Positions 11,252 through 60,861 of a DNA stretch of 64,000 nucleotides are shown one piece after another. The notes under the pieces are model-generated. The model was not told the DNA's origin. It was given only the letters and a program-made list of their open reading frames with translations, and ran no database searches. Both the position numbers and the translations under genes were made by a program. Source of the stretch: Anthoceros angustus. Its lineage: Eukaryota; Plantae; Anthocerotophyta. Position 1 is the stretch's first letter, and the number at the start of each line of letters is the position of its first letter. The stretch covers positions 1-64,000 of the forward strand of contig VJWM01000297.1 of the NCBI GenBank assembly GCA_010909165.1, in the 5' to 3' direction.

Positions 11252-11572
11252 CTGCAATGGAATCGGAGCTCAGCGTGAAGTGGGTGGAAACGCGTACTGG
11301 ATACAGGAACGAACAATTCAGCTAAGATCGATCTACATTTTCTGCCGCTTGGATCCGTTCAATCCTCAGTCAAATCCACGCTCGCAAGGGAGAGTGGCCG
11401 CAACACGTCCCCTTTGCAAGCGCTGAACGGACAAAAAGAACAGCAAACCGAATCCCAAAAATGCATCTGATAAGCTTCTTCAAATCACGCCAGCAACATC
11501 ACGCCAATGCAAACATGGCAACAACTTTTATCCTCGGATCAACGCGGCAGGTGATTCCGTCAGCTTCATTAC

Positions 11573-11686
11573 CGGAAGCGGAGCGGTACAAAGGGAAGCG
11601 GACGCAGATGCCAGCGGACACAGGAGAAGCAGCAAGAAGAAGAAGAAGAATGGCCGCGGGGGCCCTGACGAAGCTGCCATAGCCAT
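11573..11686 (-). CDS. Possible first exon encoding a signal-peptide-like N-terminus
   Basis: MAMAASSGPPRPFFFFFLLLLLCPLASASASLCTAPLP is followed by a CCG|gtaatg donor. Linkage to the SET gene was not demonstrated. Confidence 0.4.
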
Positions 11687-13109
11687 CCGCCTGCTGGCTT
11701 CAGCACAGCAATGCGTGCTGGTCCGGATCGAGGGGGATTGAAAGGAGTCACAGCACAGCCCATCCAAGCCATCCAAGGTCGCAGTCACCAGATTTGCTTC
11801 CGACTCGCTAAGCAAATCTTTCCATAATAATGTTAGCATCTACAAACACGTGCATTTCTGTTTAAGTACATACTTCTATGTACATATGTACATAGCGGGA
11901 CACGCTAGAGGGAGCAGATCGGCTGGCCAGACGTAGGACCCGCCACCTCCTTGGCATGGTGGTCCATGTCACCAGCTTCTCCCCTCTCTCTTTCCATCCC
12001 CGCGTACGCCACTTTCCGCCCTTGTTGTACATCGCTGGCTACCGGCACGGGCGTCAGTCTTTTCATTTCGAATAGGGTTTGCGGCCTTGCCTTACTGCGA
12101 GGAATGAGTGTTGGTGAGCATGTCGCCTCTGCCAGCAGCTCACCGTGCGTTGTGAGTGTGGAAGTAGGGAATCGCTCCTCCCCATGGAAGGCAAGCTGCA
12201 CTCCAGAGGCGGAGGGAGGGAGATATGGGTAGGATGAGGTATGTTTTGCTCTCTTCCGATTGTCCGCTGAGGTTATTGCCACAACAGGACGTCATGCACC
12301 TTGTCATGCAGTAAAAGCGACAACCATTTCTTCGTCACACCAGGTGCCGAACTGTGCTTGATTGTAACAGATTGCTACATGAGAGCGCCAGGATAAAACA
12401 TCCCTGGCGCTGGATGCTGAACATCGAAGGGTTGCCGTTATTCCAATTGCTAGCAATCCCCTTAGAAAGAGGGAGCTTGGCTAGCCGTGTACAGGGCTTG
12501 TTGTTGGTACCTTCGTTTGCTTCTTGTTGAAGCAATACATACAATGAGGAAAGTGGCGTATGGGGAGGAAAGAGAGTGAGCGGAAACTCGCTCGAGGGAG
12601 AACCCGCTCGCGGGAGTCCGGGCGCGCCCTCCCGAAAGGAGGACCAATGGTGCTTACAGTAATTGTTCCGTGCTTGGAACTCCGAAAGTCTTGTCCAAAA
12701 CGTATCCTACAGTTTTATGTAGGTATTGCAATTCTGAGTGGTTTGCCGAGGCCGGGCACGCATTTCAGATAGTCGCTGTGCTGCGTTCGGGATCGCGTGT
12801 CAGAGAGCCGATGTGCTGCATTCTGTCGCGCTCATGAGACATCTTGACCCGATTCCATCGGGCCTCCAATTGAGAGGAGGTCCACTAGTACTGGACGGAG
12901 GGGAAAGAGGGCAAAGGACAAAATTAGATGATCAGGGGGAGATGGAGAGAAGAGGGAAGGAGGAGGAGAAGGGCAACTTAGCTCATGCCTGTGCCAGACT
13001 GGTCCTTGGCATCTCGCCATCAGTACTGGACAGGGGGAGTACAGAAGTTAGATGAGCGGGGGAGATGGAGAGGAGGGGAGGAGGAGGAGCCTGCCCTGCC
13101 TGCTGGGCG

Positions 13110-22239: not shown

Positions 22240-23700
22240 GCCAAGGTGCACGCAAGCGTCCAGCGAAACAAATTGCATCAACGTGTCTACTGCGATGAAC
22301 ACGTTCTTGTCAATCTAGTCTCGAACCACCACCTCATTTGACAAAACATCATCATCCCCGTTGAACGGCAATGCTCCAAGTCCGCCTCGGGGGATGTTCC
22401 ACGTCTCCATGTCCTCAAATCGCCATTGGTACCGCTGCCATGTTCCACTCTCCCCACAACTCTCGATGTCCCTTTGTGGGGCGGTGGCCTTCTCTTGGCG
22501 CGCAGCTGGATCGGAGTGGCTAGGTGCTGGGTGGATGGCGAGGATCGAGCTTGCCCTCTCATCCTCCCCACCACCTACGGTTTGGCGTCGGCGGCCGCGA
22601 CGCCCCGCGGCTGGTGCTCTCGCGTATCGATGTCTCCAAACTCGGCGGCCGCCTTCATCCATTGCCCGTTCGGCCGATCCCATGCAAGGCATTGGCTTGC
22701 CCCTTCTGCGGTTGCCAAGCCAAGGTGCATAGCGTCCGCGAAACAAATTGCATCAAGCGTGTGATGCGATGAACACGTTCTTGTCAATCTAGTCTCGAAC
22801 CACCACCTCATTTGACAAAACATCATCATCCCCGTTGAACGCGACGCATGCTCCAAGTCCGCCTCGGGGGATGTTCCACGTCTCCATGTCCTCAAATCGC
22901 CATTGGTTCTGCCATGTTCCTCTCCCCACAACTCTCGATGTCCCTTTGTGGGACGGTGGCCTTCTCTTGGCGCGCAGCTGGATCGGAGTGGCTAGGTGCT
23001 GGGTGGATGGCGAGGATCGAGCTTGCCCTCTCATCCTCCCCACCCACCTACGGTTTGGCGTCGGCGGCCGCGACGCCCCGCGGCTGGTGCTCTCGCGTAT
23101 CGATGTCTCCAAACTCGGCGGCCGCCTTCATCCATTGCCCGTTCGGCCGATCCCATGCAAGGCATTGGCTTGCCCCTTCTGCGGTTGCCAAGCCAAGGTG
23201 CACCATAGCGTCCGCAAACAAATTGCATCAACGTGTGTACAAATGCGATGAACACGTTCTTGTCAATCTAGTCTCGAACACCCACCTCATCAGCAAAACA
23301 TCGCCATCCCTTGCGTTGGACGCAATGCTCCAAGTCCGCCTCGGGGCCGGATATTCCACGTCTCCATGTCCTCAAATCGCCATTGGCTGCCATGTTCCCT
23401 CTCCCCACAACTCTCGATGTCCCTTTGTGGGACGGTGGCTTCTTGCGCGGCTCGGATCGGAGTGGGTGGTGGGGTGGATGGCCAGATAGCGATCCGAGCT
23501 TGCCCTCTCATCCTCCCCACCTACGGTTTGGCGTCGGCGGCGCCGTGGCGCCCGGCGGCGATGGTGCTCTAGCGTATCGCAAACTCGTTAGCGGCCTTCC
23601 TCCATTGCCCGTTGCCGGGCACCGCCATCGCCATCGAAGGCATTGGCTTGCCCTTCACTGCGGTTGCCAAGCCAAGGTCGCCCGCAAAATTCAAAGCTCT
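22240..23700. repeat. Three ~475-bp tandem copies inside the CACTA element
   Basis: The anchor gatgaacacgttcttgtcaatctagtctcgaac occurs at ~22294, 22768 and 23247. Confidence 0.9.
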
Positions 23701-28500: not shown

Positions 28501-28913
28501 CCATTCGCGAGCACTTGTATGTATGCGGGCATCATGGCGGGCGCAGACGCGCGCTCCAAACGCGAGAACTGTCCTCCATTCACCTTGTGGACGATGAGTC
28601 GGCGCGTTGATGCGGGGCGTCAGTTCTGCGCCAAGTTCATCCGGCGGTGAGAGCGGCCGTGGGATGAGGCAACCATGTGATGTGCGGGGCCTACACAAAC
28701 TCTCCTCGCGTGCGATCGGCGACGGATAGGTGGCGGCTATTGAAAGGGAGGACATGTGCGAGCTAGCGGTTGGGGCACACCACGCTAAGCGTCGTTGCAA
28801 ACATGTGTTGTTGCTAAACAAATGTCAACTTCTTCAAAGATTGACAATGGCAATTGGCGTGAAGCTGCATTGAAAGGCAATCTAAGATTGTCGGGACGGC
28901 CGCGCGCTGCCTT

Positions 28914-29250
28914 GGTAGTCCACCTCCTTGATTTGCACTTCGTCCATAGAAAGGGATAGTGTAGAGCTCATGCTCTCAAAGTCTCTATACAACTCCCATG
29001 TTGCGTGCGCCATTGCGGTGAAAGGCGGTGCACCCGGTGGCAGGTGTTCCATGCCGTCCGCATCCCAAGCCCATGCCTTGGTGTAGTCCACCTCCTTGAT
29101 TTGCACTTCGTCCATAGAGGGATAGTGTTGAGCTCATGCTCTCAAAGTCTCTATACAACTCCCATGTTGCGTGCGCCATTGCGGTGAAAGGCGGTGCACC
29201 CGGTGGCGCAGGTGTTCCATGCCTCGCCACCGCATCCCAAGCCCATGGGA
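28914..29250. repeat. Two ~170-bp tandem copies
   Basis: gtagtccacctccttgatttgcacttcgtccatag...cccaagcccatg occurs at ~28914 and ~29084. Confidence 0.9.
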
Positions 29251-34539: not shown

Positions 34540-37500
34540 ACGCGGAGGAGGAGGAGGGCGGCATCATTTGTTTGCGCCAGCTGGGTGGGCACGTGCGAGG
34601 TCAATGGCGAGGAGGATGGCGGTGCCGCTTTGGCATGCTAGTGTGGAATTGCTCAGCAGATCGAGGCCGGGGGCGCGCGGCGATGTGGGCGTATCGCCTC
34701 TCTGGACGGCGGGAGTGGATGCGGGAGGTCCTTCCGTGAGCCGGATGGAGGCATGGATGTGCCTCGTGGGGAGGGAGGCATGGAGACGGAACAAGTGGAA
34801 GGTGTTGGTGATGAGGAGGAGCGGCAACAAATCCTCCTCATTCCATCCGACTGCCTCCAATATGTGGGAGCTAACGGTGGAGCTTGTGGGTGCGAGGGGA
34901 CATGCCGGCGCGACGCGGGTATGAAAGGGCCCTCCACAGGAGGCACGAAATTGGACGAGGTGCGTGAATGAGGACCGCGGTGGGCTTGTGGAGGATGATG
35001 GTGGTGTTCAGGGGCCAGCTGGATGGCGGATGGAGAATCGGGCTCTTCTAGAAGAGCTTTTGTTTGTGACCATGGGGACCTCCGTAGGAGTGTGCAGAGG
35101 AGGTCTCAAGGGCAGCAAAGTGCTGCCTTTGGAGCCGATGCCAATGAGGCTAAGGAAGAGGAGGGAGGCCACGCACTGCTCGAGTCGAGAGGCACGTGAC
35201 GAGGACACCACCGGCACCGAGGATGGTGGCGGGAGGGAGGCGGTGGGAGTGGAAATGGCTGAAGAGGTGGAGGAGGACCTCCGACAACATTGATTGAGGA
35301 GAGATAGGGAGCACGGAAAGTTGGCGGTAAGCCACTTGGCGACATTATTGCCGTGTTGTGCAGTGCATGGTCGTGGGGGTTTACATGGCTGAGCCTGTGT
35401 GATGGAGGGTGGGTGGAGAATGAAGATGAGGAGGAAGAGCCCACCGGCGAGGAGGGAGTCCGGAAGGCCTTCCAGCGTGTTGGAGCTAGTGTGCGAAGAT
35501 GCGCTTGATGCTCCCATGGTCGAGCCACGACGAGTCTTTGAGGGATAGATTGGTGAGGAAGGTGGAGTATGAGTTTCCTAGCATAGGCGAGGATATCGTG
35601 GCTAGGTTTGCGGGGCTTCGGACAAGAAACCTAGCGTTGGCAAGAAGGTGCGACAGTGCTTATTTGGAGGAGAAGGGAAAGATGCGAAATGGCTCCACCC
35701 TCCGACGTCGGAAGGCATGGAGGCGGGGGGAGCAAGCGGTGGTGACGTTGCACAAGCACGGTGGTGTGTGGCCAACCCCACAAGCGCAGCAACTCGACTT
35801 GCAAAGCACGAGCATGGGACCAATCCATTTGGTCCCATGGGAGCAAAAGAGTTCGAGAGAAGGTATGTTCAACGGTGGGGAGGAGCAAAAGAGAGTTGAA
35901 ATGGGCTGCGAAACATGGATTGGAGAGCATGCCGAACTACTGGAGTGGTATGGCGATAGATCGGGGCCTTGGTGGAATTGCTGTGGTCGAGATCAGTCGC
36001 ATGTAGGACATGAAGGCGTGAGCGAACGGTGTGTGCATGGCTACAGTCGGAAGGAGAAGGAAGGTATGTGCGGTGAAGGGCACGAAAAGATGGAAGGAAC
36101 CATAGCATGTCCCGAGGGGAAGGGAAGGGAAGGTGGGGAAGGAGGGAGGCATCACACTCAAGTGATGTCGGAGGCAGTGGGGATGGTGTGGAAGGTGGAG
36201 GTGTGAGTGCGTTGCCACCCACAAGACGAATCACAAGATCTGTCTCAAAAAGTGTGAGTTTGGTGGCAATGACGGCAGGGATGAATTAAATGCAGGTCCT
36301 TTTGCCTAACGTAACATAGTGCACGGTGGTTATGCAGCCTATGGGGCCAGGAGTGCAAGGCTTGAGCGTGGAGGTCAGTGGCTCGAATGCCGGCACAAGT
36401 CGACATGGCGGAGAAAGCAGGCGGAGGCTGCTAGGCCAAAAGGGTCGCAAAGGCAGCGGTTGTTGAAGATGCGGGAGTCGGACTCGGATGACGTCAAGAG
36501 CGAGTTGCCGCCATCGTGTGGTATGTGCAAGTCCATGTCTGGCAATAAGCCTGGATTGAGTTGAGTTGTGGACGCTGGTAGATATTGATGCCAGTTCCTA
36601 CCTTCCAGCTGTGCAGAGCTTGGAGCAAACGGCAAATGGAACACGCACCGGGCGAGCGCATCAAGGGGGCATCCACAAAACCGCCATCGCAGGTACCGTG
36701 GTTGGTGGAGGTGGAGTGCTTGTGGTCGAGCAACTTGCGACGCGATGCTAGTGCGTCGAGGGCGGCGATGTGGGCGATCGCCGCTCTGCGAGGCGGGAGT
36801 GGATGCGGGAGGGTCCCGAGCCGATGGAGGCATGGAGGCCTCGTGGGGAGGAGGAGCGGTAGTGGAAGGTGTTGGTGATGAGGAGGAGGGAGCGGCAACA
36901 AATCCTCCTCATTCCATCCTGTCTCCAATATGTGGGGAGCTAACGGTGGAGCTTGTGGGTGCAGGGGACGGCACGCAGAGACTTTGAAAGGGCCCTCCAC
37001 GCGAGGAGCGAAATTGACGAGGTGCGGGTGAGCGAGGCGGTGGGCTTGTGGAGGATGATGGTGGTGTTCAGGGGCCAGCACTCTGGATGGCGGGATGGAG
37101 AATCGGGCTCTTCTAGAAGAGCTTTTGGTGATCATGGGGACTCCGTGGGGAGTGCGGGAGGGTCTTTCGAAGGGCGCAAAGTGCTGCCTTTGGAGTTTGC
37201 TACAGGAGGCTAAGGAAGAGGAGGCCCACACTGGGTCGAGAGGCACCGTCGAGGAGGACACCACGGGCACCGAGGATGGTGAAAGCGGGAGGGAGGCAGT
37301 GGGAGTGGAAATGGCTGAAGAAGAGGTGGAGGAGGACCTCCGACAACATTGACAGGAGAGATAGGGAGCTGAAAAGTTGGCGGTAAGCCACTTGACGACA
37401 TTATTGCCGTGTTGTGCATGCATGGTCGTGGGGGTTTACATGGTGGAGCCGTGTTGATGGAGGGTGGGTGGAGAATGAAGATGAGGAGGAAGAGCCACGA

Positions 37501-38800
37501 GGAGGGAGGCGGAAGGCCTTCCAGTAGCGTGTTGGAGCTAGTGTCTTGGCGAAGATGCGATTGATGGTACCATGGTCGAGCCACGAGACTTTGAGGGACA
37601 GTTGGTGAGGAAGGTGGAGTATGAGTTTCCTAGTGAGCGAGGATATCGTGGCTAGGTTTGCGGGGCTTCGGACAAGAAACCACAACGTTGGCAAGAAGGT
37701 GCGACAATGCGCTTATTTGGAGGAGAAGGGAAAGATGCGAAATGGCTCCACCCTCGATCGGCAAGAAGGCATGGAGGCGTGGAGCAAGTGAGCGTTGCAC
37801 AAGCACGGTGGTGTGGCCAACCCCACAACAAGCCGCAACTCGACTTGCAAAGCACGAGCATGGGACCAATCCATTTGGTCCCATGGGAGCAAAAGAGTTC
37901 GAGAGAAGGTATGTTCAGCGGTGGGGAGGGAGCGCAACAAAAGGGGTTGAAATGGGCTAAACATGGATTGGAGAGCATGCGACTCTTGTGGTATGGCGAT
38001 AGATCGGGGCCTTGGTTGAATAGCTAGGCGTGGTCGACAGTGCGCATGTAGGACATGAAGGCGTGAGCGATGGCGATGCGTGTGCATGGCTGCGGTCGAA
38101 GGAGAAGGAATAATGTGCGGTGAAGGGCACGAAAAGATGGAAGGAACCATAGCATGTCCCGAGGGGAAGGGAAGGTGGGGAAGCAGGAGGGCATCACACT
38201 CAAGTGATGTCGGAGGCGGTGGGGATGGTGTGGAAGGTGGAGGTGTGTGTTGCCACCCACAAGGCGAATCACAAGATCATCTCAAAAGTGTGAGTTTGGT
38301 GGCAATGGCGGATGAATTGAATGCGAGGTCCTTTTGCCTAACGTAACATAGTGCACGGTTATGCAGCCTATGGGGCCGAGTGCAAGGCGAGCGTGGAGGT
38401 TAGTGGCTCGAATGCCGGCACTCAAAGGGTCGACAGCGGAGAAAGCAGGCGGAGGCTGCTAGGCCAAAAGGGTCGGCAGCATTGAAGATGCAGGAGTCGG
38501 ACTCAATGGTCGAAGAGGCATGTTCCGCCGCTGTGGTATGTGCAAGTCCATGTAAGCTCGGATTGATTTGTCTTGTGGCGGTAGATATTGATGCGTTCCT
38601 ACCTTCCAGTTGTCGAGCTTGGAGCAAACGGCAAATGAACACGCACCGGGCGCGCATCGAGGGCATCCACCGCCATCGCCATGCGTGGTTGGTGGAGGTG
38701 GAGTGCTTGTGGTGGCCTTGACAGCTTGCTGTCGAGGACGGCGATGGTCGATCACGAGCAGAGGAAGGGAGATTTGCACGCACACAAGTAGCGGTCATTC
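34540..38800 (+). pseudogene. Second, divergent TnpA/Transposase_24-like gene, present as two ~2 kb tandem copies
   Basis: LRDRLVRKVEYEFP...KVRQCLFGGEGKDAKWLHP...AKHEHGTNPFGPMGAKEFERRYVQRWGG at ~35520-35900 and ~37580-37960. The motif layout parallels the minus-strand TnpA-like copies. Confidence 0.5.
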
Positions 38801-40172: not shown

Positions 40173-40674
40173 TATGTTGGTTGTAGGCTGTAGAGTGAAC
40201 TTCAGTTTCATATGAAACTTGGAGACTCGATGAATCAAGTTATAGAATCAGACACGTTGAATCCAGCCATGTGTACTTGGTGGAAAGTTCTTGTCGAGAG
40301 CTACACGACGGTATCAACTTTCATGTAATAGCAAACCTTTAGAAATCCGTATCTCCCTCCAGATGAAACAAAATTCAAGCTATGTGTACTTATTGGAAAG
40401 ACCTCGTCAAGAGCTACATCAAGGTATAACAACATATAGCATGGAACGTGTGTGGAGTGCACTACGAATACTAGAAGATGGAGAACTCAAGTTGAAACTC
40501 AAATGGAGGCAAAACTTTACAAGACTCTAGTTGAAACGAAATTGAAGCCACATAGACTTGTTTCAAAGCCCTTTTGTGGAGCTACAGTATGTGTGTCCAA
40601 ATGGCTTAGGCCAAATGAATATACATTTATAAGAACGTGGTCATTAAGCATCCTGCGCTTGGATCCGTACTTAG

Positions 40675-43048
40675 ATGGGGTGCCTAAAGGGAATGGATGC
40701 CCTTGGTGCAAGTAGCTTAGGCATACCATGGTACAAGTTGTTAAGTACCAAGTCCCATGACGGAAATCCATCCATAGTGGACTTAAATAAAATTCTTCTT
40801 CTTCTTCTTCTACTCGCTGGGGTTGGAGTCATGCTCCTTCTGCCCAACATAAGGGCTGCTAGCTTGTCCCTTTAAACTTTCCCCTACACGATCTGCAGCC
40901 CTTGCACTTGGAACTGTAATGTCGTCAGGATCATGCTGAGAGATTGTGTCTATGGCACGGTCAACATCACTATCCTGCATATCGATATTGATGTTATGTA
41001 GTATACAACAGCAGAATGCCAGTTTGCCAACTTGCTTTGGATCTGGTGAAATTAGACATTTGTTCAAGATACGCCATGTACCTTATACAATAAGCCAAGG
41101 TAGTAATGGGAAACCCATCACCAATTATGTACTCGATTCCGTGAGGCCCCACAAGCATATCGATCCATGGAGTCGCCTGTCTTTACGCTAGTCGGTATAG
41201 GAATTACGAGAACTCGAATCGCTTACGCTCTTGGCCACATAGACTTGTTTTCAAAGCCCTTTGTGGAGCTACAGTATGTGTGTCCAAATGGCTTAGGCCA
41301 AATGAATATACATTTATAAGAACGTGGTCATTAAGCATCCTGCGCTTGGATCCGTACTTAGATGGGGTGCCTAAAGGGAATGGATGCCCTTGGTGCAAGT
41401 AGCTTAGGCATACCATGGTACAAGTTGTTAAGTACCAAGTCCCATGACGGAAATCCATCCATAGTGGACTTAAATAAAATTCTTCTTCTTCTTCTTCTAC
41501 TCGCTGGGGTTGGAGTCATGCTCCTTCTGCCCAACATAAGGGCTGCTAGCTTGTCCCTTTAAACTTTCCCCTACACGATCTGAGCACTCTTGAACCTAAA
41601 TGTCGTCGGGATCATCTTTGAGAGATTGTGTCTATGGTACTGGCCAACATCACTATATCGCATATCGATATTGATGTTATGTAGTATACAACAGCATAAT
41701 GCCAGTTTGCCAACTTGCTTTGGATCTGGTGAAATTAGACATTTGTTCAAGATACGCCATGTACCTTATACAATAAGCCAAGGTAGTAATGGGAAACCGG
41801 CATCACCAATTATGTACTCCTGGATTCTGTGAGGCCCCACAAGCATATCAGATCCATGGAGTCGCTACTTGTCTTCGCTAGCTCAGATAGTCGGAATTAC
41901 CGAGAACTCGAATCAAGTTCTTGGCCAGCCAGCATAGACATCAATGAAGAGCATGCTCATGTCGACAGTACCTTGAAGAGTGATGCTGTAATTCTTCATG
42001 TGGTTTAAGTAAATTTGAGGTCATACCAGAGGCAATTCTAGCTCAATGGGTGACATCAATAGCTCCTCCTGCACTTGGGCTGTAATGTCGTCGGGATCAT
42101 GCCGAGAGATTGTGTATACTGGCACGGTCAACATCACTATCCTGCATATCGATATTGATGTTATGTAGTATACAATGAGAATGCCGGTTGCCAACTTGCT
42201 TTGGATCCGTGAAATTAGACATTTGTTCAAGATATACGCCATGTACCTTATACAATAAGCCAAGGTAGTAATGGGAAACCCAAGATCACCAATTATGTAC
42301 TCGATTCCGTGAGGCCCCACAAGCATATCGATCCATGGAGTCGCCACTTGTCTTCATATCGGAATTACCGAGAACTCGAATCGCTTACGCTCTTGGCCAG
42401 CCAAAGATAGACATCAATGAAGAGCATGCTCATGTCGACAGTACCTTGAAGAGTGATGCTGTAATTCTTCATGTGGTTTAAGTAGGCTGTTGAGGTCATA
42501 CCTGTAGGCAATTCTAGCTCAATGTGGGTGACATCAATAGCTCCTCTGCAATTTGGTAATCCACGGTGATTCCGGAAACCCATCTCCACCTCACTTGCCT
42601 CGATACCTGTTGGCCACTTTAACCTTGTCTAAGGTGGTGTGGAGGTTTGTGTGGTCACTCACCTCTCACGCAGCCCACCATGTGAATAATTCAGCAACTA
42701 CTCTGAGAGAATCTCCAATCCCCATTCTAGTGAGAACCATAGCCACTTGTTTTCAACATGCAACTTACAATTTGGCAAGGTAATGAGACCTGGAGGAGGA
42801 CGTCTGGTCAAGTCAGGAGCAACAATACTACAGATGTAATTGAATGTGGTTGGGGAGACTTTGATCATCTCTTTCCATCGGTCAGGATCTCTATTTAGAA
42901 CAATTGTCATGAACTTTGCCCACCAATGAAGTGACTGTGGCTTGATGTAGTACATGCCTACCCTTCTCTGAGGCTTCCAGTACAATCGAGCTGCTATGCA
43001 TACCAGCAGCCACATTGTGGTGAGGAGGGTGTCCTCCTCATCTGCCAT
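40675..43048 (-). mobile_element. PIF/Harbinger (HARBI1-like, DDE_Tnp_4) transposase; its 3' ~0.7 kb is present three times
   Basis: RWKEMIKVSPTTFNYICSIV, GLPNCRGAIDVTHI, KNYSITLQGTVD, YIIGDLGFP, KLAFCCCILHN. The anchor gagattgtgt(c)tat occurs at ~40939, 41623 and 42106. Confidence 0.9.
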
Positions 43049-43596
43049 TCTCGTGGAGGAAGGAGAACAAAAATTTGCACATTGCGTAGGCAATAAGCTC
43101 GCTTGTAGATGTAGCTACGACGCTGTATGCTATGCGCTTGGGATTATGGCCACAACGGCCATCATAGCTGCGAGAATCGAGTGCCCTTGACGATCAGCCA
43201 AGATCGCGCTAACAGCGAAGAACCACTTGTAACACCATAATATTTGAAGCGGCTGAATATACAAACCCGCTTCCGCAGAAAAGGGACCAGTTTTCAAAAA
43301 CACCCGGTGGGCACCAAATTCCCACATAGAGTTGTTTTCTGTTTTTGAGTGATGGTTCATGATATCCCTACCCTAAGGCAGGTACGTATTCCACCGATAA
43401 TGCTTCTTAGGTATGGTTTAAATGCATCGGCATGCCGGCGCCTTGCGCCATTTCCATCGGAGCGTCTGTCATTCGCGGTACATGATTGACTGAAAAAAGG
43501 TATGATGCAATGAACTAATTATGTATGTAGTGAAAAGGCGCCTCGCGTCTCCTTCTTCCTTCACTATAAGGAAACACAAAACCTAGCACAAATACC

Positions 43597-46262
43597 CTAG
43601 CTTCCGAGTTCTTCAGATGATCGAGTCTCGGTGGGCACGACGGATATGCTATCCATCACCAATTCAATGCTTTTGAGACGGGCGTGCTCGGGGTCTTCGA
43701 AGTTGTCGTTCTCCATCATGGCATTTTCGGCATCCAAAGGATCAATAGGATTGCTTTCGGTGTTGTAGTCCGGATGCCACACTGCGCTCAAAGTTCTCTG
43801 TCCATCATCCAAGATTTCCCCCGTTTTCTCCTTCATTCTGTTGAACCCCAAAGGTACAACCTGCGCTTGGGAGACACCCTTCTCGGACAAGCTCAATTCC
43901 TTTGCCCAAAACTAGGCTGGTCCTCGTCAATGTGGCTCGTGATTCAACTCCTCCTCAGCGTCCGGGAGTACTTCATATCCATGAATCCGTTGTGGGATGA
44001 ATTCCGCGCAACGCTTGTCCAAATCCACTGCAATGCAATTTCGACCACAAAGCAACGCGCGATTTGTCGTTCGCTCCACACTGCGCATCTACAATCCGGT
44101 CCCCTCTTCGAGAAGTTTTGATCGACTTGAGCATCAACCCCAGTGGCCTCTGATACGCACACACAACTAGCTTGTCCAATGACATATATAGCTGCTTCTT
44201 CACGACGATGTGCCCAATATTTGCCACGACCATTGTTGAAAGAGCCATGGACGTTGTTAGGCAACATTGAAACCCTGCTTAATTTGCTGGTAGTGGTAAC
44301 ACCCCAGCCCATCGTGATGTACTCCATGATCATATCCACCACGATCATTATGCATATTGGTTTTGTCCCACACAAAGGAGACCATTCCTCCACCAATGCA
44401 CCACCGCATTGCCTCCCTTACAATATGCACTCTTCCACACCATGCATAACTATCATTCGATTTCTTGACTTGTCATATCATGGAAAGAGTGAAACACTGT
44501 ACCAATTTGTGTCTGATCCATCTTCACATCATGCTTCCCTTTGTGGAATCCTCTTGGCACATCCATAACCAGCAATGTATACTTCCCCATCCTTAGAAAT
44601 CCTCGCATGTCCAACACATCTCTTGCAACCACTTGGTATTTAACAATAAACCCCGTTGTTGGCACAGTGAATGTCTGTAGGCCTTCCTCCATGTCCATGT
44701 CAGCCAGGGCTCTTTGTTCGTTCTCCAGACCTTTCAATGTGTGCACTTCAAGTATGAAAGCCTGGAAGTCTTGGCGATTTCTTGGATCTTCTACATCTTT
44801 CACTTGCTACACACAACACAGGTTAGGTGGTTAGTGCACAACAAGCTTGTCCGAAAAAATGCAGCGGGGAGGGCGCCGGCATGCCGGCGCCCTCCCCACC
44901 CCTACTTCCTTCTAAAGCCTCAATTCCAACATGAGGAATGGAGAGGGCGCCGGCATGCCGGCGCCCACATCGTTCCTACTTCCTGTACTAAAGAAGAGAT
45001 ATACCTTCCCATCGAACGCTGTTTGAAACCTTGCAATGACATCGTCCGAAGAGTGCATAGGGTATTCCTGCCGCACCATGTCGAAAGAGTCGCATCCTAA
45101 ATGCTTTGCCATAGCCACTTGTATGACATGAAGTTTCTTCCATAGAGTGAGCTCCTTCGACATACCATTGAGGTCAAGCAAACCTGTCAAAACCTTTTCC
45201 GTCACATTGATGAGCATTTTTGTCCAGTCTCACGGTGGAATTCCTTGAAGCTGCCATGGTTTCCCCTGCATCTCTTTCGGCTTCACGAAAACGCTTTCAA
45301 CCATCTTCACCTCCTCTCCAACTTTGCGTTTGCCCTTGCTCTTCTTCTTTGGTGCATTGCAACATGTTTGGCTTGTTAAGCTCCATCGCCTCCCACTTTG
45401 AAAAGATATTGTCGACATTTCTCCAAACCTTTCCCTCCAGTTTCGCAATGCATAGGATATGTGTCCTGTTGTCCACTTTGTTCTGCTTATACTGTTCATC
45501 TTCCCGGCCTTCGTCATCCTCGATCAGCCCTAACACCTTGTACAAATTGAACTTCCAGTTCATGCTCATTGTCACTCCGTCACGCTTTGCTATCTGCAGT
45601 TCATCTTTGAGGTATCTGACGTGCTCGATAAAGTTCATCTTCTTCCTTTTGTCCGACATTGTGTTGTGGTCAGTTGCCAATACTCGCATCTCCTGAAGAG
45701 TAAGCCCACAGTAAACATGAGCCTCCATCCATTGGAACCTTGCTTTCCCCGGAGAAATGTCACCAAGTTGCTTCATAGCGGCGTATGTGTGATTGCCTCC
45801 CAGCACTCCCATAATATATTTTTTTGCCCTGAACTTCGTCCAATCAAGTTTTTCGATATCCCTGCAGTCATACATAGTAGTGGCAGAACACCTTCTTCAA
45901 TCCGACCTTTCGAGATGACTCGAGCTAAATAGTTTGTCCATGCCTCATCTACTTGCCGAATCTGAGCATCTGGAGTGAGGAACGAAGCAGGCCTCAAATT
46001 CTCCAGCTTCACAAGGCATCTCGAGGCACCTTCTTCGCATGGCGATTCCGGACTTTTGCAAGTAATCCTCGTCCATCATGGAGGCCTCCAGTCTTTCTCC
46101 ATCAGTTAACACATGCAATGTTGGAATATCACTTCGGAAGCCACAGCAGCGCGACTTTTTCTTGCTTGAACCCTCGGCAGTGTCCACGCTTTGAGATCTG
46201 CTATTTCCACCCCCAGCCCCGAGGCTTATACTCGTTCGCTTACTCTTCAACCCTGATGCCAC
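43597..46262 (-). CDS. ParB-like domain fused to a beta-class N4-cytosine/N6-adenine DNA methyltransferase (N6_N4_Mtase-like); two exons, frameshifted as assembled
   Basis: N-half: LENLRP...QIRQVDEAWTNYLARVISKG...PLL...YIMGVLGGNHTYAAMKQL. A phase-0 GT-AG intron spans 44807-45004. C-half: YTLLVMDVPRG (motif IV-like, 44549-44563), SFVWDKTN, YQRPLGLM...GDRIVDAQCGA (motif X/I, ~44072-44152), TTNRALLCGRNCIAVDLD. About 820 codons after restoring roughly ten 1-2 nt indels. Confidence 0.75.
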
Positions 46263-46286
46263 TTATTCATAAGAACGCGAGGCACT

Positions 46287-46600
46287 GCCGGCATGCCGCC
46301 CCTCCTCATCGACCGCACCTTCACGGCGCATGCCGCGCCCTCCTCATCGACATTTCCACGGGCGCCGGCATGCCGGCGCCACTCTTCATCAACGGTGCAC
46401 CTTCGCGGGCGCCGGCATGCCGGCGCCGTCTTCATCACCGGTGCACCTTCACGGGCGCCGGCATGCCGGCGCCGTCTTCACGGCGCCGGCATGCGGCGCC
46501 GTCTTCATCGGCCGGTGCACCTTCACGGGCGCCGGCATGCCGGCGCCCCTCCTCATCACCATGTGGACCTTCACGGGCGCTGGCATGCCGGCGCCCCTCC
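46287..46600. repeat. Array of ~8 copies of the palindrome GGCGCCGGCATGCCGGCGCC with a ~40-48 bp period
   Basis: Directly visible. Further copies lie at ~43428-43441, ~44873-44892 and ~44946-44966. Confidence 0.95.
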
Positions 46601-46643
46601 TCATCAACCTGAGTACCAGTGGTTGTGATATCGATTGTAGTTC

Positions 46644-46724
46644 CATGGACTCACCTGGTGAGTCTTTCACATGCATGGACTCAGCCGGTGAGCCTTACAC
46701 ATGCCTGGACTCACTCCGTGAGTT
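46644..46724. repeat. Three 30-bp tandem repeats containing the palindrome GACTCACC-T-GGTGAGTC
   Basis: catggactcacctggtgagtc / catggactcagccggtgagcc / cctggactcactccgtgagtt. Confidence 0.85.
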
Positions 46725-46943
46725 GTAGTCATCCCAGGACCTGAGCCGTGAAAGGTGCCGATCATTTTGTCCTGTATGGAACCATGGGGTGGGTTAAAAA
46801 CGGGGCAGTATTTTATTAACAGCACTGTAGCACAATAGTTTTTTGCAGTTTTTCTATTTCCATAACAAGACATCTTGTATCACAAACTGCCAACTGCGAC
46901 CGCTCTGTTTGTTTTTTCCTTGTAAAAGGCTATTGAGAAGCAA

Positions 46944-47916: not shown

Positions 47917-49205
47917 ATGATATATCTAAGTAGCCCATGTTACAGGCCCATGTTAGGGCTAGCAATCATTTTTGCTAGCCTTTTATTTGCAACAGCTAGC
48001 AACAATACTAATTATATCATGGACTGTCAATTTCATGGTTTATTTGCCTTTGGTGATTCACTAACGGATACCGGAAATGCTCAAACAATATTTCCATGGC
48101 AACATGCTGCATCCATATCTCCATATGGAGAAACTTATTTTGGTCGACCTGCAAATCGATTTTCAAACGGGAGGTTGGTAATTGATTTTATAGGTACTTA
48201 TCTATATATATTTTTATCATCATTTTTGCATTTATCAATTGATTTTATTTGTATGTGTTAGCTTTCTAACTTTCTACCTTGTTACCTTGTTTTGCAGCTC
48301 AAGCTTTGGGATTACCTTTTCTGAATCCATACCTAAGTAATATAGGAAATAATTTTCAATTTGGAGCAAATTTTGCTTTTTCTGGAGCTACTGCGACTAA
48401 TATCTCCTTTTTAGTACCTTTTCGCCTCAAGCAACAAGTGAATTGGTTGAAGCAATTTTATGTTGATGCACTTAGTCCATCAAATTATGAATCGGGGTGG
48501 ATTGGATCTTTTCCAAGGGAATCATATTTTTACAGGGGATTATACGTGGTCAATATTGGTAGCAATGATTATAATGCAGCACTACTCTTTCATAATTACT
48601 CTGAAAATGAGTTATTAATGATGATCCCCAACGTGGTTCAGGAAATTTTACTACGCTTGCGAGACTTGTATAACGTGGGAGCTAGAAATTTTATGGTTTT
48701 TAATATACCTCCCATCGGGTGTGCTGCAGAGTTTCTTTCAATGTCACCTACTGCTTCTACAGCATCTGCAGATTCTTATGATGCAAATGGTTGCTACATT
48801 CCTTACAACTCTCTATTGAGTATACATAACGATGAACTACGACGGGGAATTGAAACTTTACGGTCCGAACTTTATTTGGCAAAAATTGTCTATGTAGATT
48901 ACTATCAAGCAACGTATAATATATCTCGAGAATATGTACAATATGGTTTTACAGAAAGAATAGCCGCATGTTGTGGAGGAGGAGGAAAATGGAATTTTAG
49001 TCCAAATGCAACTTGTGGTTCAGTGAATGCGACAGTTTGTAATGATCCAAACCAATACATAAATTGGGATGGCATTCATCCTACACAAGCTTTCTATAAA
49101 ATAGTTGCAAGATCTATTTTAAAGGGTCAATTCATAGATCCTCCTAATGCTTTCACCGCTTGTAGTTTTGATTTTACCCAATTTGATGTTGTACCAACCC
49201 ACTAG
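47917..49205 (+). CDS. GDSL esterase/lipase, secreted; two exons (47917-48193, 48298-49205)
   Basis: Hydrophobic N-terminus, LFAFGDSLTDTGN, GRFSN-like RPANRFSNGRLVIDFI, GANFAFSGAT, IGSND, YINWDGIHPT. There is a single phase-1 intron. Confidence 0.95.
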
Positions 49206-54696: not shown

Positions 54697-56881
54697 CTAG
54701 GTTGACCTCCGCAATTTTGTGTTCAGAGGAGGTTCCTTGTAGGAGGCAATGCATGCGGTTGCCCTCCTCATTGGCCTTCCAGACACTGCACTTACAAGTG
54801 CTCGTTTCTGAGATAACTCTGGACTCTCCACTTTCAAAGCAACAGGACTTAGTCCGTGGCGTGACCGTTTCATGTCCTTGTCTGTGTCGGGCTCCATCTT
54901 TGCTGCTAGTCTTCTTCTATCGGGTGCACCAGTAGCACATTCCAAGTTCTCAGGTGAGCCAACAGCTTCCATAACAACACTACTTGGTCTTCGAAGACGT
55001 CCCTGCTTCTGGAGCTTGACAGCTGGCTTCAGATAATCTTCTGCTGCAGCTGAAGACACTGCTCTGCCAGTTTCTGACAGCAAGGACGGGCTTTCAAACG
55101 CATCAGCTGGGCTATCTTCCCTTGCTGAGCTGGAGATCGTTTCATCACCCTCACACAATCTGTCCATGGCCTCATGCTCCAGAACTTTGTATTGCCGGCT
55201 GTGAATACTCTTGGGTACAGCCAAGAGCACTTCCTGTGGAACCTTATATGGATCTTCCTTCGTTGCAGCAATACCCCTTGACCTCAGGCTCAGCCTGCAA
55301 ACAATTTGGAACAAGACTTGGTCAAACCTCTTTCACCTCGACCTTCAGAACTTTAGGCTGTGTCATATAGTTTACTCCACAGTGATTGACAGTACCTTCT
55401 ATACGTAGGAGGCTCATCTTTCATGCACGCAGACTCACTGCTGCCTGGCCTAGAATTTTGCATGTCCTCCAATAGCTGACCTGCAGGGCGAATGTATGGT
55501 AACATACTCCCAACACCAGATAGTGCTCAGAAAAGGGTCTTGACAGAACGGCACCTGGGGTCATGCTATGTCTTTTGGTCGAAGAAGCCTTACTCCGAGT
55601 TCTCAATGTTGTGGTTGAGCCTTTGCACACATTCTGCACATAGGAACATACACATAATCAACATAAAGGGGCAACAATGTGACACAATGCCTGGTAGAAC
55701 GCCTCTTATCAACCATACCTGCATCTGCTTGTCCATTAGGAGCATATTTCGGCTGTGTTCCAGTTCTTCAAGTCTAAGCTGCAAGTAGTTTAGAGAGTCA
55801 GGTTACTATGTAATCAAGGTGCCAATACAATATGACTAATCCCTAATAGCATCATTGCAAAGCGGCCGCTAGCAACTTTCTAAGACCAATGAATGTACAT
55901 GGCTAGTGCATATCGTCTATTGCTAGGACACTTGCACACGTCATTAGGGATATTGCTTTCCCTGCTGCCACAGAACATGGGAACAATATGGTTAGGTTAG
56001 AATTGGCAGTTTCATTGGCATACCCGAAGCTCAGCTTCCATAATCCTGAACATAGACGCCATCTGGTTGTGCTCATGCTGCAAAATTTTCATCTGTAGAA
56101 GTCCAGCAAATGACATGAGCTAAACACCTCTCACACGCATCAGGTCCACCACCCCACAAAAATCTCTGTGCACAAGCGGAAGTACTATGGTATTACTTGC
56201 TCCCTCAGTTGAAGATTTTCCTGTCAATGCCAACATTATCAGGCTGTCATGCCCTTTTACCACTCGAGAACAAAAAAGTGAGTATGGCAGGAGATACTAT
56301 TTTAACCGGTCTCTGCAGTCGTTTTGACAAGTGAACTTAGGACAATCAAAGGTTTTGTTCTAACCTTGGACAGCCTGGTATTGTGAAATATTATCTCCTC
56401 ATTCACAGCGGCTCTACGATGCAAATTGAACGTGTACTCCTTTTGAAGCTTTTGCACCTGCTCGGTCTGCGCTGCAATCATCGCACTAAGACCTTCGGGT
56501 TAAGGAGAAAACAGCGAAGAGGTACAAAAAGAACTAGGTTCACGCTGCAAAACTGCAAGGTCTGCCAACACATGAAACTAGGAAAGGATACTCCTTCTCG
56601 GACAACAATTTCGTCAACGTGAATATCTCCTGCAGCATACAACATTCAAGACAAGCTTGATGCACGAAACAAATTGCAGCAAAACTGGCCACTTTAGAGC
56701 GACAGACTGGAAACATAAAGAATTGATACAGCAGCCATACCTTCTGTAGTTCCTTGTCTTTGTTGGAAGGAATTAAATTATCCAGGCTGGCCGTGAACAG
56801 CGGCAGGTTTGTTAGATCAGACAGACGCCTCCTGTGACCTGGGGTGGCAGAGGCGCGCTTCCCTTGCCTATCGCCCCCCAT
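54697..56881 (-). CDS. SGO1: Shugoshin, multi-exon
   Basis: N-terminal RRRLSDLTN, coiled-coil exons (VQKLQKEY..., KILQHEHNQM..., LRLEELE), and the C-terminal SGO motif GRPMRRATACIASYKEPPLNTKLRR. The exact first and last exons are uncertain. Confidence 0.85.
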
Positions 56882-58323: not shown

Positions 58324-60861
58324 TCATTCCACCCTCTCCGTTTTTAATCTGGAGATGAAGTCGGCATTAACATGCTTCCTGCCTTCTCTCGTCTCAACAG
58401 TAAAGGTGAACTCTTGAAGCAGCAAAATCCAATGGGCTATGCGTCCCAAAAGGTCAACGTTGTTCACAAGGTGCTTGAGAGCAAAATGGTCAACATGGAA
58501 CACAAACTCATACGAAAGTAAGTAGTGTCTGAATTTTCTGACCGAGTAGACCATTCTAAGTGCCTCGCGCTCTGTGGTGGTATACTTTCGCTCTGCGTCC
58601 GTCAGTTGTCGCCCAGCATGGTAGATCGGATAATTTTTCTTCTTTTCATCCCTCTGGCTAAGAACCGATCCGATGGCGAAGGCTGAAACGTCAACAAAAA
58701 CATGAAATTTCTTTCTCCAATCAGGCCCCCTCAGCGTTGGCACTGTAGCCAGTGTCATTCGTAGGTCCTGGAATGCCTCCTCTCGCTCCGACGTCCATTC
58801 CCACACCTGATCCTTTCTCAACAGACCCGTTAGTGGGGCAGCCTGTTTGGCGAAATTTGGAACGAAGCGTCTGTAATACCCAACCATTCCAAGGAAACCA
58901 TGAAGCTCCTTCAGCGTTGTTGGAGCTCTAAGGGCAGCTATCACCTTTACCTTATCTGGATCAACTTCTATACCTCGATCCGAAATTCGATGCCCCAACA
59001 GGATACCTTCCGACATGCCAAAGTAGCACTTCTCTAGATGCAAACACTATTGTGTTGCACGACATTGTCCCAGACACTTTTGAAGGTGCATCAAATTGTC
59101 CTTCACAGTTCCAAACACGCAAAAGTCGTCCAAGAAAACTTCCATAAAGTCCCGGAGGAAGTCCTTGAATATTTTGACAATAGCCCGCATGAAGGAACCA
59201 GGTGCCCCTATCAACCCGAATGCATTGCGTTTGTAGGCGTATGTTCCCCAATCCGCTAGTTGGCGTGGCCACTTTCCACGAGATGTTGTAAATCAAGTGC
59301 CCATCCAAGAAGGAATAAGCCATCCTGCCTGTGACCAGAGCTAAAATGTTGTCGATGAAGGGCAACGGAAAATGATCCTTCTTAGTGACTTTATTCAACC
59401 TTCGCCAATCCTGGCAAACCCGGATCTTACCCGACTGTCTCTTAGGCACCACAACGATCGGAGCTACCCATTCTGTGTTGACGATAGGATAGATCACATC
59501 CGCTTTGAGATACGGCTCCAACTGATCTTTTACCTTCAATGAGTACTTGGGGTTTAACTTGTACTGAATTTATCATCCTTGCTCCAGTCGTTCTTATGCT
59601 CTCCCCACTCTTTGGGTATACCCTGCATGTCGGTTACATCGGAGGCAAAGACGTCGATGAATACCGCAAGCAACTGTTTCATGCCCTCCTTAAGCGCTGC
59701 GCTCATTTTTGGAGAATTTGAGCACTTTTCCTGGAAGTACCTCAACGTCTTTGATTTCATCCGCTTGTACCCATTCACGCTCCACCGGTGCGGAACTGAC
59801 TCCAAACCCTTCCTCTGGCTCTCGCGGCTCTTCTTCTCGCATGCCCCATTCTTTGAACAGATCTTTCGAGGTGAAGCGCGTGATGCCTGTTCCATTCTCC
59901 TCAACCGATTGTTCCTGCACTTCGCTCCCTCCTTCTTCCATCAAAATTCCAATGCAACATAAATACATTATAACAAAATTTCACCGACACCGTGTGGGAT
60001 ATCTCTCCGATAATCATGTTCCTCATCAGACCAGGAGATGTGCGCGAAAGGGAACCTATCTTCTCCATCCGTCTCCCCTGATGTGTCCTCAGCTGTGGTA
60101 TACCCGTCCGTTTCTGTTGGGGTCTCGCCAGCGTACATATCCCTACTCCAGGATAAGCAAATCCTACCCTCCTTAGTCTTAGGATCCCACTCGAGAGGTT
60201 TGAAGCCATCTTCCTTTCTTCCCCACTTGAGCGTGCATTGCGATCCATACATCCAAGTTCGACCAATTAAAACGTTATACCCCGGCGACTTCTGCTTGAT
60301 GACTACATAATCCATTAGATAGGGAATGGTTCCGATGGTCGTTAGCATGCGTGTCAATTCCCCTACCGGCACCATTCTGGACATGTCTGCCAGCTGCAAA
60401 ACTTTGGAGGTATGCTCGATTTCCAACCCCAATTTCCTAGCCGTGTCCTCTGTCATGATATTCACGCCCGAACCAGTATCGAGAGGTACCCCTTTAATGA
60501 CGCACCCCGAGATCTCTACTTGGAGTTCAGCTGGGCCTTGGTTAACCATGGATACCAGATTCACAGCAAGTGGCCTTGGTCCCGATTTAGGAAGGCTCCG
60601 CTTTTTCTTGGGTTGGGCTTCCTTCAATGCCCTCCTGATTTGCTGCCGATACCGCGGGTTGTCTCTAAGGAGTTGTCCGAATGTGATCATGAAATGCTGG
60701 TCCATGATGGCTTCCGCTAGGTTAAAAGGAGCACTTGCTCGTTCCTTCCCTCCACCAGGGTTTGTGTTGGTTCCTGGCCCCAGACCTATGCCCGAGGCAT
60801 GCGGCTCTCTCGTGGTGGCGGACTCTCGTGGGAGGTAGGAAACCGTGTCCGTGGATTCCAT
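58324..60861 (-). mobile_element. Ty3/gypsy retrotransposon pol: aspartic protease, reverse transcriptase, RNase H (frameshifted); gag core and integrase not recognised
   Basis: VPLDTGSGVNIM (protease). WVAPIVVVPK...IRVCQDWRRLNKVTKKDHFPLPFID (RT). GFLGMVGYYRRFVPNFA, FVDVSAFAIGSVL, YTTTEREAL, WILLLQEF, NADFISRL (RT/RNase H). Confidence 0.92.

Follow-up and report, generated by a model that had tools for sequence, protein, structure and literature searches.

Results

A broken ParB-methyltransferase gene with adjoining palindrome arrays

The 64-kb stretch of Anthoceros angustus DNA analysed here (contig VJWM01000297.1, positions 1 to 64,000; hereafter the window) carries at 43930-46021 on its minus strand a series of short open frames, chained across three frames, which by sequence comparison is a copy of a eukaryotic, multicopy, transposon-like family of proteins that combine a ParB/sulfiredoxin (Srx) domain, a helical middle part and a PF01555 DNA methyltransferase (MTase). 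The copy is a pseudogene with one intron, and arrays of short repeats adjoin its 5' end. Its parts are given below along the minus strand, with E-values from hidden Markov models (HMMs) of the family unless the hhalign program is named, and are followed by the repeats.

45872..46021, minus strand: ParB-like domain, putative first part (RCLV...LENLRP...QIRQVDE...LPLL), placed by eye against the family alignment, in a frame that differs from that of the next piece
45339..45869, minus strand: ParB/Srx-like core (VLGGNHT..A, GLT..E...A.DHN) plus the helical region that comes after it; best preserved piece, E 1e-37
45233..45349, minus strand: Lys-rich linker and conserved P-x-x-M...PW..LQGI; hhalign at the expected columns, weak, E 0.013
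45005..45229, minus strand: middle domain, helical (..VLTGLLDLNGMSKEL...EYPMHS..FDGK), ending at the splice donor; E 7e-12
44807..45004, minus strand: phase-0 GT-AG intron of 198 nt, GT at 45004 and AG at 44807, containing stops
44456..44806, minus strand: N-terminal part of the MTase domain, with a degenerate motif IV, LLVMDVPRG, at 44575-44549; E 9e-7
44284..44382, minus strand: MTase segment VSFVWDKTN...LGCYH, the family's W-x-KPN...LGYY; hhalign at the W-KPN columns, weak, E 0.011
44075..44206, minus strand: motif X and start of motif I (AYQRPLG...GDRIVDAQCGA); E 8e-4 with the MTase-only model, 0.024 with the full model
43930..44070, minus strand: remainder of motif I and C-terminal helix (TTNRALLCGRNCIAVDLD...RIHGYEVLPDAEEE), with TGA next, at 43929-43927; E 7e-6, full model 1.5e-4
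46284..46606: about nine units of 46-48 bp in tandem, all centred on the GC-rich 20-bp palindrome GGCGCCGGCATGCCGGCGCC or on a degenerate version of it, adjoining the 5' end of the pseudogene
46644..46730: second short array, of 30-bp units with the inverted repeat GACTCA...TGAGTC, from repeat analysis
43428..43442: partial palindrome copy CGGCATGCCGGCGCC, ~490 bp downstream of where the supported coding pieces end, from repeat analysis

All 1,952 six-frame segments of the window were searched with a full-length family HMM built from an alignment (A2) of full-length relatives. Exactly five segments matched at E<=1, all of them on the minus strand and colinear:

45869-45339, minus strand: E 1e-37, profile positions 258-431
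45217-44999, minus strand: E 7e-12, profile positions 501-573
44725-44468, minus strand: E 9e-7, profile positions 598-683
44206-44075, minus strand: E 0.024, profile positions 770-814
44070-43957, minus strand: E 1.5e-4, profile positions 818-855

The picture obtained with a methylase-only profile agrees with that of the full-length model and, similarly, tblastn with P0001/P0036 as queries revealed 43% identity over the middle helical domain, in an alignment that stops at the splice donor. The LENLRP/QIRQVDE piece, sought at 46075-45875, returned no significant alignment by hhalign or BLASTP, only spurious or weak ones. Pfam searches with nine window pieces gave no match, PF01555 and ParBc included, and we place the pieces in a PF01555-bearing family because the family HMM matches them, which is their sole tie to it.

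The initial annotation of this locus had joined the open frames into one reading frame of ~820 codons, taken as an intact and spliced gene. Every motif that it quoted is present on the minus strand and the pieces are colinear with a real protein family, but the supported reading amounts to ~630-700 codons, and the outer pieces at 46262-46047 (N-terminal) and 43911-43600 (C-terminal) are without homology support. The motif order reported for beta-class enzymes was confirmed: DVPRG (44575-44549), WDKTN, QRP and D.Q.GA/TT follow one another in the permuted succession of motif IV, target recognition domain and motif X/I, and the family profile follows CcrM residues 15-258. As for motif IV itself, LLVMDVPRG stands at the expected place, but it is not canonical, reading DVPRG where the family has D-x-P-Y-G.

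The copy is dead and its intron is old

When the intron is removed in silico, the window protein becomes colinear with intronless relatives (a Chara copy and P0037). The intron lies within two alignment columns of the annotated intron in Riccia P0034, and the reading frames of L001 and L007 (both from Riccia) and of L006 (a Logan contig) break at HMM position ~573, which is the window intron site; Chara copy 2 and the metagenomic locus L002 read through this position without interruption. Because its position is common to P0034, L001, L006 and L007, the phase-0 GT-AG intron described initially is real, and it is old within land plants.

The reading frame is shifted near 45875, at 45372-45349, 44456-44382 and 44284-44206, and at ~44072. 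The linker piece (45349-45233) is entered via the second of these shifts and terminated by an in-frame TGA at 45232-45230, which was overlooked initially; the WDKTN segment has a frameshift at either side; and the last shift falls within motif I, the S-adenosylmethionine (SAM)-binding motif, which reads DAQCGA in the window and is intact in the relatives. In motif IV (DVPRG), Arg takes the place of Tyr. Five or more frameshifts and an in-frame stop within ~2 kb mark the window copy as a pseudogene, and it therefore makes no protein. We also considered the view from which the work started, namely that this is a functional spliced plant gene whose indels are sequencing errors: the breaks between pieces do resemble small frameshifts of 1-2 nt, and the intron is clean. 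However, the stop and the frameshifts crowd into ~2 kb, whereas the adjacent GDSL lipase open reading frame (ORF) runs uninterrupted for 308 aa, so generally poor sequence quality is unlikely to be their cause, and both the change of the catalytic Tyr to Arg and the broken motif I speak against a working enzyme. We reject this view as very improbable. The window copy is thus a fossil only, which marks the past presence of the family in the host genome and has no other function.

A multicopy family in eukaryotes

An exhaustive phmmer search with a 199-aa window piece against 1.84 billion cluster representatives returned 35 relatives of the 45339-45869 piece, the best of them 38-43% identical. 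The named ones come from Chara braunii, the liverwort Riccia sorocarpa, the fern Adiantum nelumboides, Ginkgo biloba and the annelid Owenia fusiformis and are all eukaryotic; no bacterial or phage name occurs among the 35, the others being Logan, ENA and JGI (metagenomic) contigs that carry no taxon. Likewise, a tblastn search of 50,697 phage records with P0037 gave no match. Horizontal derivation, as put forward initially, was stated too firmly; neither search turned up a close bacterial or phage relative. A named angiosperm protein is also missing from the 35, through sampling or true loss. The named plant hosts (Chara, Riccia, Adiantum and Ginkgo) all use motile sperm.

The transposon-like character proposed initially is supported, for the family, by copy number: Chara braunii has at least 17 further paralogs, dispersed on separate scaffolds, and Ginkgo has five, with copies 58-95% identical to one another. 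A word-indexed homologue search yielded Ginkgo or Chara paralogs only and gave no taxonomic breadth. On the Chara scaffold BFEA01000570.1 (L003), family copies lie at 10001-12252, 35803-38376 and 44254-46307. The Chara gene model GBG86584.1 (1825 aa) is a chimera that fuses two family copies 24 kb apart, with a fragmentary third nearby, and one of the copies within it is a clean single-exon ORF of 858 aa. The Owenia proteins contain the ParB-like domain only, the methylase search being without match; their ParB-like regions lie at 18481-19008 and 28527-29043 of CAIIXF020000012.1 (L004).

The methylase half resembles CcrM-type adenine methylases

In four relatives the C-terminal half scored above the PF01555 gathering cutoff of 26.7 bits (Ginkgo P0012 with 65.7 bits, E 7.6e-18; Adiantum P0027 with 42.3; Riccia P0034 with 28.8; Chara P0003 with 27.3), so that the PF01555 assignment proposed for the locus holds for the relatives but not for the window pieces themselves. 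The top NCBIfam model for the methylase half is CcrM and the top phage family is PHROG_67 (E 1.5e-27). Among solved structures, the family methylase profile matched DpnA (E 6e-11), M.RsrI (E 9e-10), CcrM (E 4e-9), M.MboIIA (E 4e-9) and the bdelloid N4-cytosine enzyme N4CMT (E 1e-4).

The profile alignment superposes the family's 'IaDaPYGfa' on 'FADPPYNLQ' of CcrM, i.e. on its DPPY. The family consensus of motif IV is D-x-P-Y-G, with A, L, F, I or V in place of the first Pro and with the variants DAPYG, DLPYG, DFPCG, DIPHG, DALYG, DISQG and DVPRG. The copies with the longest ORFs (the Chara 858-aa ORF, Chara P0086 and P0037) have kept Asp, second Pro and Tyr, motif I (D-x-F-x-G-S-G-T) is intact in relatives (DLFSGSGTT, DGFSGSGT), and motif X (QKP) is well conserved. 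In this class of enzymes, Asp or Asn at the start of motif IV goes with N6-adenine methylation and Ser with N4-cytosine methylation. Under this established rule the Asp-type motif IV would make N6-methyladenine (6mA) the more likely product and N4-methylcytosine (4mC) the less likely one. The initial leaning towards an N4-cytosine writer is not sustained, given the Asp and the scores of the N6-adenine enzymes (E 6e-11 to 4e-9) versus that of N4CMT (1e-4).

The N-terminal domain is predicted to fold like ParB and sulfiredoxin

We modelled residues 60-237 of P0002, the nearest relative of the window copy to retain the entire domain (42% identity with the window piece), by AlphaFold2 (AF2) with the family alignment, and obtained a model with a predicted local distance difference test (pLDDT) of 86.5 and a predicted template-modelling score (pTM) of 0.76. 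In a Foldseek search of the PDB with this model, the top 38 matches were all Noc, ParB, sulfiredoxin, PadC, pNOB8 ParB, KorB or Atu1540, with probabilities up to 1.0, a modest best E-value of 2.5e-3 and Srx-normalised TM-scores of 0.61-0.64. Similarly, the named matches among the BFVD viral models were all ParB-like, and some of them are phage proteins annotated as DNA methylases. The model thus supports a ParB/sulfiredoxin fold for the N-terminal domain of the relatives, and the ParB/Srx relationship proposed initially stands at the level of a relative's predicted fold but not as a match to Pfam ParBc.

Palindromes lie upstream of the gene and within its intron

None of the palindrome arrays figures in the initial annotation. 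Allowing up to two mismatches, the window contains seven occurrences of the palindrome GGCGCCGGCATGCCGGCGCC, with 0 expected by chance, and all seven fall within 44872-46595: five in the upstream array and two in the intron, where they form an inverted pair with 33-nt arms that are 91% complementary. Other family loci have palindromes of their own:

L001 (Riccia): TGTATGCGCGCATACA-type palindromes upstream at 9153-9754, three in the homologous intron at 11650-11776 and two downstream
L007 (Riccia): upstream 22-bp array with GGATCC; three ACCCATGCGWCGCATGGGT palindromes in the same intron
L002 (metagenomic): five AAAAATGCATGCATTTTT upstream, at 107-bp spacing
L009: TTTAATGCATGCATTAAA at 106-bp spacing, with the ATGCATGCAT core kept; protein with 72% identity to the L002 protein
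L006: seven or more TTCAAGCCAGCTTGAA, none farther than 400 bp from the start codon

The gene therefore travels with lineage-specific arrays of short palindromes, which lie directly upstream and, in three land-plant copies, also in the intron. In these three, the conserved intron holds two or three palindromes of the element's own type (L001:11650-11776, L007:11757-11882 and window 44866-44966), whose sequence is specific to each lineage. The intronic palindromes could be a binding or autoregulatory site, or the trace of an intron born by insertion of a repeat unit. In Owenia L004, eight TAGAATATTCTA palindromes lie 2.6 kb beyond (3' of) the gene.

A half-site, YATGC, is common to the palindromes of the window (44872-46595), L002 (4921-5367), L009 (100-223), L001 (9153-9754) and L007 (11757-11882), as seen in GGCATGCC, TGCATGCA, TATGCGCGCATA and CATGCGACGCATG; we regard its apparent recurrence as a lead and not as a result. 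TGCATGCA corresponds to the plant RY/Sph element, the target of B3-domain factors.

A possible mechanism and the evidence against it

The window holds the pseudogenised relic of a transposon-type ParB-MTase with its palindrome arrays, and we hypothesize that intact relatives direct methylation to their own element. In such relatives the ParB-like/helical module would bind the palindromes as a dimer, as ParB binds parS, and this binding would tether the methylase to the DNA of the element, where it would deposit N6-methyladenine most likely and N4-methylcytosine less likely. The methyl mark might then label the element, e.g. to counter silencing by the host or for the timing of its activity. 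Algal transposon accessory proteins offer precedents for such a mechanism (PMC12477816; 10.1101/2025.02.11.637652). Taken as a whole, this explanation strikes us as probable, with considerable room for error.

Several observations weigh against it, and they concern the enzyme, the reader domain, the arrays and the surroundings. First, neither the family nor the window conforms to the canonical motif IV, (D/N/S)-P-P-(Y/F/W), and the Tyr is replaced by H in Ginkgo, by C in one Chara copy and by R in the window; the non-canonical motif makes methylase activity uncertain. It is conceivable, therefore, that the methylase half is an inactive, SAM- or DNA-binding pseudo-enzyme and that the protein is a DNA-binding regulator rather than a writer, as the deviation of motif IV in family copies and the low Pfam scores of several members would allow. 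The deviant motifs, however, come from the window pseudogene, from a single member of the large Chara paralog set and from mutually similar Ginkgo copies, whereas the longest-ORF copies keep the Asp, second Pro and Tyr that match the DPPY of CcrM, and motifs I and X are well conserved in the family. We consider a pseudo-enzyme distinctly unlikely.

Second, Pfam ParBc matched neither the window pieces nor 20 relatives, and the family N-domain profile retrieved nothing at E<=10 from PDB sequences, including any solved ParB; because the sequence profile found nothing there, the ParB assignment rests on the fold search. The arginines of ParB box II (GxxRxxA) are replaced in the family by GGNH[ST]xxA, in which the His is invariant and Arg is absent, and GGNH[ST] is nearer in form to GGCHR of Srx. 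CTP-dependent clamping as in chromosomal ParB cannot be assumed for such a domain.

Third, what connects the ParB-like domain to the palindromes is their co-occurrence and an analogy, which together suggest a link. DNA transposons commonly have subterminal repeats to which transposase binds, and these would have a similar appearance. At the Chara loci we found tandem repeats upstream and no clean palindromes, and in the homologous intron of L006 no palindromes were found. Fourth, remnants of DUF7869, a gene that accompanies two relatives (see below), were not found in the window by tblastx, tblastn or HMM search.

On these grounds, the arrays might be unrelated to the ParB-like domain and represent subterminal transposase-binding sites, promoter or other regulatory repeats or hairpin-prone satellites, with the methylase acting elsewhere or non-specifically. 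Consistent with this alternative, the arrays lie at the 5' edge of the gene, a possible site of element termini or promoters, L007 has one sequence in its upstream array and another in its intron palindrome, the Owenia array is on the 3' side at a distance, and the Chara repeats lack a clean palindromic form. On the other hand, the same palindrome is present upstream and within the conserved intron of the window and of L001, which is unexpected for terminal repeats, and the palindrome core has been retained between L002 and L009 although their proteins are only 72% identical. Moreover, the red-algal ParB-containing PAG3 genes are also reported to adjoin tandem inverted repeats (10.1101/2025.02.11.637652). 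Unrelated arrays are in our view possible and deserve weight, but are on the unlikely side, and we retain self-directed methylation as the preferred explanation.

A bolder version of this explanation is that streptophytes (Chara, liverworts, ferns, Ginkgo and the source of the window) carry active transposon-borne 'self-addressed' methylases, in which a ParB-fold module would read a rapidly co-evolving palindrome (half-site ~YATGC), present in arrays upstream and within the conserved intron, and the enzyme would write 6mA/4mC on the element, amounting to an amino-methylation in land plants that is independent of the 5-methylcytosine machinery. We put this forward tentatively and think it unlikely as it stands. 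By analogy with Marchantia DN4MT1, the motile-sperm hosts leave room for a link to sperm-stage chromatin.

Genomic neighbourhood

The remaining features of the window that bear on the relic are the following.

40813..43114, minus strand: relic of a PIF/Harbinger transposase, degenerate and with tandem duplications (~0.5-0.7 kb) inside it, from colinear sub-threshold DDE_Tnp_4 matches
48279-49205, plus strand: GDSL lipase ORF (PF00657, E 1e-28) in an AT-rich island of 35% GC; best match the lycophyte Selaginella, 45% identity
51369-51980, minus strand: PALP (cysteine-synthase-like) exon
54697-55314, minus strand: Shugoshin C-terminal exon
58324-60861, minus strand: Ty3-type reverse transcriptase-RNaseH with a gag/protease-like ORF upstream

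This plant nuclear context (GDSL, PALP, Shugoshin, Ty3) rules out that the contig is bacterial contamination, a caveat attached to the initial annotation. The nearest annotated families of the relic are indeed bacterial and phage methylases, as contamination or a very recent horizontal transfer would predict; against both stand the spliceosomal-type intron at a position shared with Riccia, the plant genes and the long terminal repeat retroelement on the contig around the copy, the eukaryotic origin of every named relative and the unsuccessful search of the phage records. Contamination is rejected, and this explanation as a whole has a vanishingly small chance of being right.

The Harbinger relic lies ~0.8 kb downstream of the ParB-MTase relic on the same strand. 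At 40547-42550, its units of ~0.5-0.7 kb are 88-94% identical and the C-terminal DDE_Tnp_4 segment occurs three times. The ParB-MTase gene might have been an accessory of this element, the two relics then forming one composite transposon: strand and distance fit, the partial palindrome lies between them, and accessory genes are reported to move between transposon superfamilies, with Harbinger elements able to carry them (10.1101/2025.02.11.637652). Yet no Harbinger counterpart was found adjoining any relative, two relatives have a DUF7869 neighbour instead, and shared termini are not definable from a single copy. We therefore doubt that the relics are parts of one composite, which seems to us rather improbable; the Harbinger relic is probably an unrelated neighbour, with a minority chance of gene capture.

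In Riccia L001 and metagenomic L002, a divergent DUF7869 gene lies 2-3 kb upstream of the ParB-MTase gene on the opposite strand; DUF7869 (PF25273) genes are at L001:4215-8109, L001:18543-21752 and L002:1303-2797. The alignment motifs DGMDQ, QLDNxxRENKN and GHTHxxxDQxFS resemble a DDD/E transposase triad, and the protein is possibly an unclassified DDD/E transposase; an AF2 model on a four-sequence alignment was poor (pLDDT 44). No DUF7869 gene was seen beside the Chara, L006 or L007 copies, and we found no mention of DUF7869 in the literature. Owenia L004 has a faint DUF7869 match at 471-584. No terminal inverted repeats were recognised around the window locus.

The GDSL ORF is without the N-terminal GDS block, presumably in an upstream exon, and leaves the ParB-methylase relic less than ~1.5-2 kb of space on its upstream side. 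Farther away, 16000-38800 consists of nested tandem duplications with units of 0.5-2.1 kb at 80-89% identity, plus a 473-bp repeat present three times at 22255-23678. GC skew is strong and has opposite signs on its two sides (-0.37 at 16-22 kb, +0.3 at 34-40 kb), and its many long Pro/Ser-rich ORFs are probably not genes.

Discussion

The initial annotation regarded the locus as a candidate undescribed system. This does not hold for the class as such, since accessory genes encoding a ParB-like domain and an N4/N6 MTase have been published for algae (PMC12477816; 10.1101/2025.02.11.637652; PMC4738411). What seems to be unreported is that the family occurs throughout streptophytes, land plants among them, that its intron is conserved and that palindromes are placed in this intron.

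The published system most akin in domain content is the Sola1-1_Ec32 transposon of the brown alga Ectocarpus, which encodes, opposite its transposase, a 1104-aa accessory protein with a ParB-like and an N4C/N6A methyltransferase domain (Dinatale et al. 2025, PMC12477816). Compared by description only, it shares with our family the union of a ParB-like domain and a PF01555-type methylase in one eukaryotic transposon protein, and its orientation opposite the transposase recalls that of L001 and L002, each divergent from a neighbouring DUF7869 gene. The same role has been proposed for it, its authors suggesting that proteins of this type attach to the element that encodes them and modify it, and citing earlier reports from green and red algae (PMC12477816). 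The present family differs in coming from streptophytes; no palindrome arrays or intron sites are mentioned in the description of Sola1-1, and Sola1-1 has its transposase alongside, whereas the window holds a dead copy with no comparable transposase beside it.

In the red algae, Plavaka elements carry PAG3, a fusion of ParB with a 2-oxoglutarate oxygenase that has tandem inverted repeats adjacent to it, and PAG2, which joins an N6-adenine methylase to a SET domain (Petroll et al. 2025, 10.1101/2025.02.11.637652). Here too a transposon-borne ParB-like domain, inverted-repeat arrays beside the ParB gene and a methylase occur on the same elements; by contrast, ParB and methylase are on separate proteins with other partner domains, and the elements belong to the EnSpm/Plavaka and Zisupton superfamilies. 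In the green lineage, a chlorophyte-type Dam is fused with a helix-turn-helix (HTH) of the ParB type (Iyer et al. 2016, PMC4738411), which likewise pairs a ParB-derived DNA-binding module with an adenine methylase; there, a Dam/DpnM (group-2) methylase is combined with the ParB HTH, whereas our family combines a beta-class PF01555 enzyme with a ParB/Srx N-domain.

ParB-methylase fusions and ParB-terminase-locus methylases are known from phages and bacteria (Iyer et al., PMC4738411, PMC5512222), and transfers of ParB-associated methylases to eukaryotes have been described by Iyer et al. (PMC4738411). As in the family, an N-terminal ParB fold precedes a PF01555-type methylase in these proteins, one example being the Mycobacterium phage Vincenzo 'DNA methylase' matched in BFVD. 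Unlike them, the family has a middle helical region of ~200-300 aa, introns, GGNH[ST] for the ParB arginine motif and D-x-P-Y-G for DPPY. The best solved matches of the methylase half, CcrM, M.RsrI, DpnA and M.MboIIA, have its fold and motif order, but CcrM-type enzymes are stand-alone or belong to restriction-modification systems, are without a ParB domain and have the canonical DPPY.

Bacterial-type PF01555 enzymes in eukaryotic nuclear genomes are also represented by Marchantia DN4MT1, whose motif IV is TSPPY (10.1101/2021.02.12.428880), and by N4CMT; these are single host genes with (T)SPPY, in contrast to the multicopy family with D-x-P-Y. Whether land plants have genuine 6mA/4mC writers besides DN4MT1 is an unsettled question, and the family offers apparently intact candidates with predicted cognate DNA sites, namely the Chara 858-aa ORF, the Riccia gene models and the intronless metagenomic copy. 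A class of proteins known from brown, red and green algae now extends to land plants.

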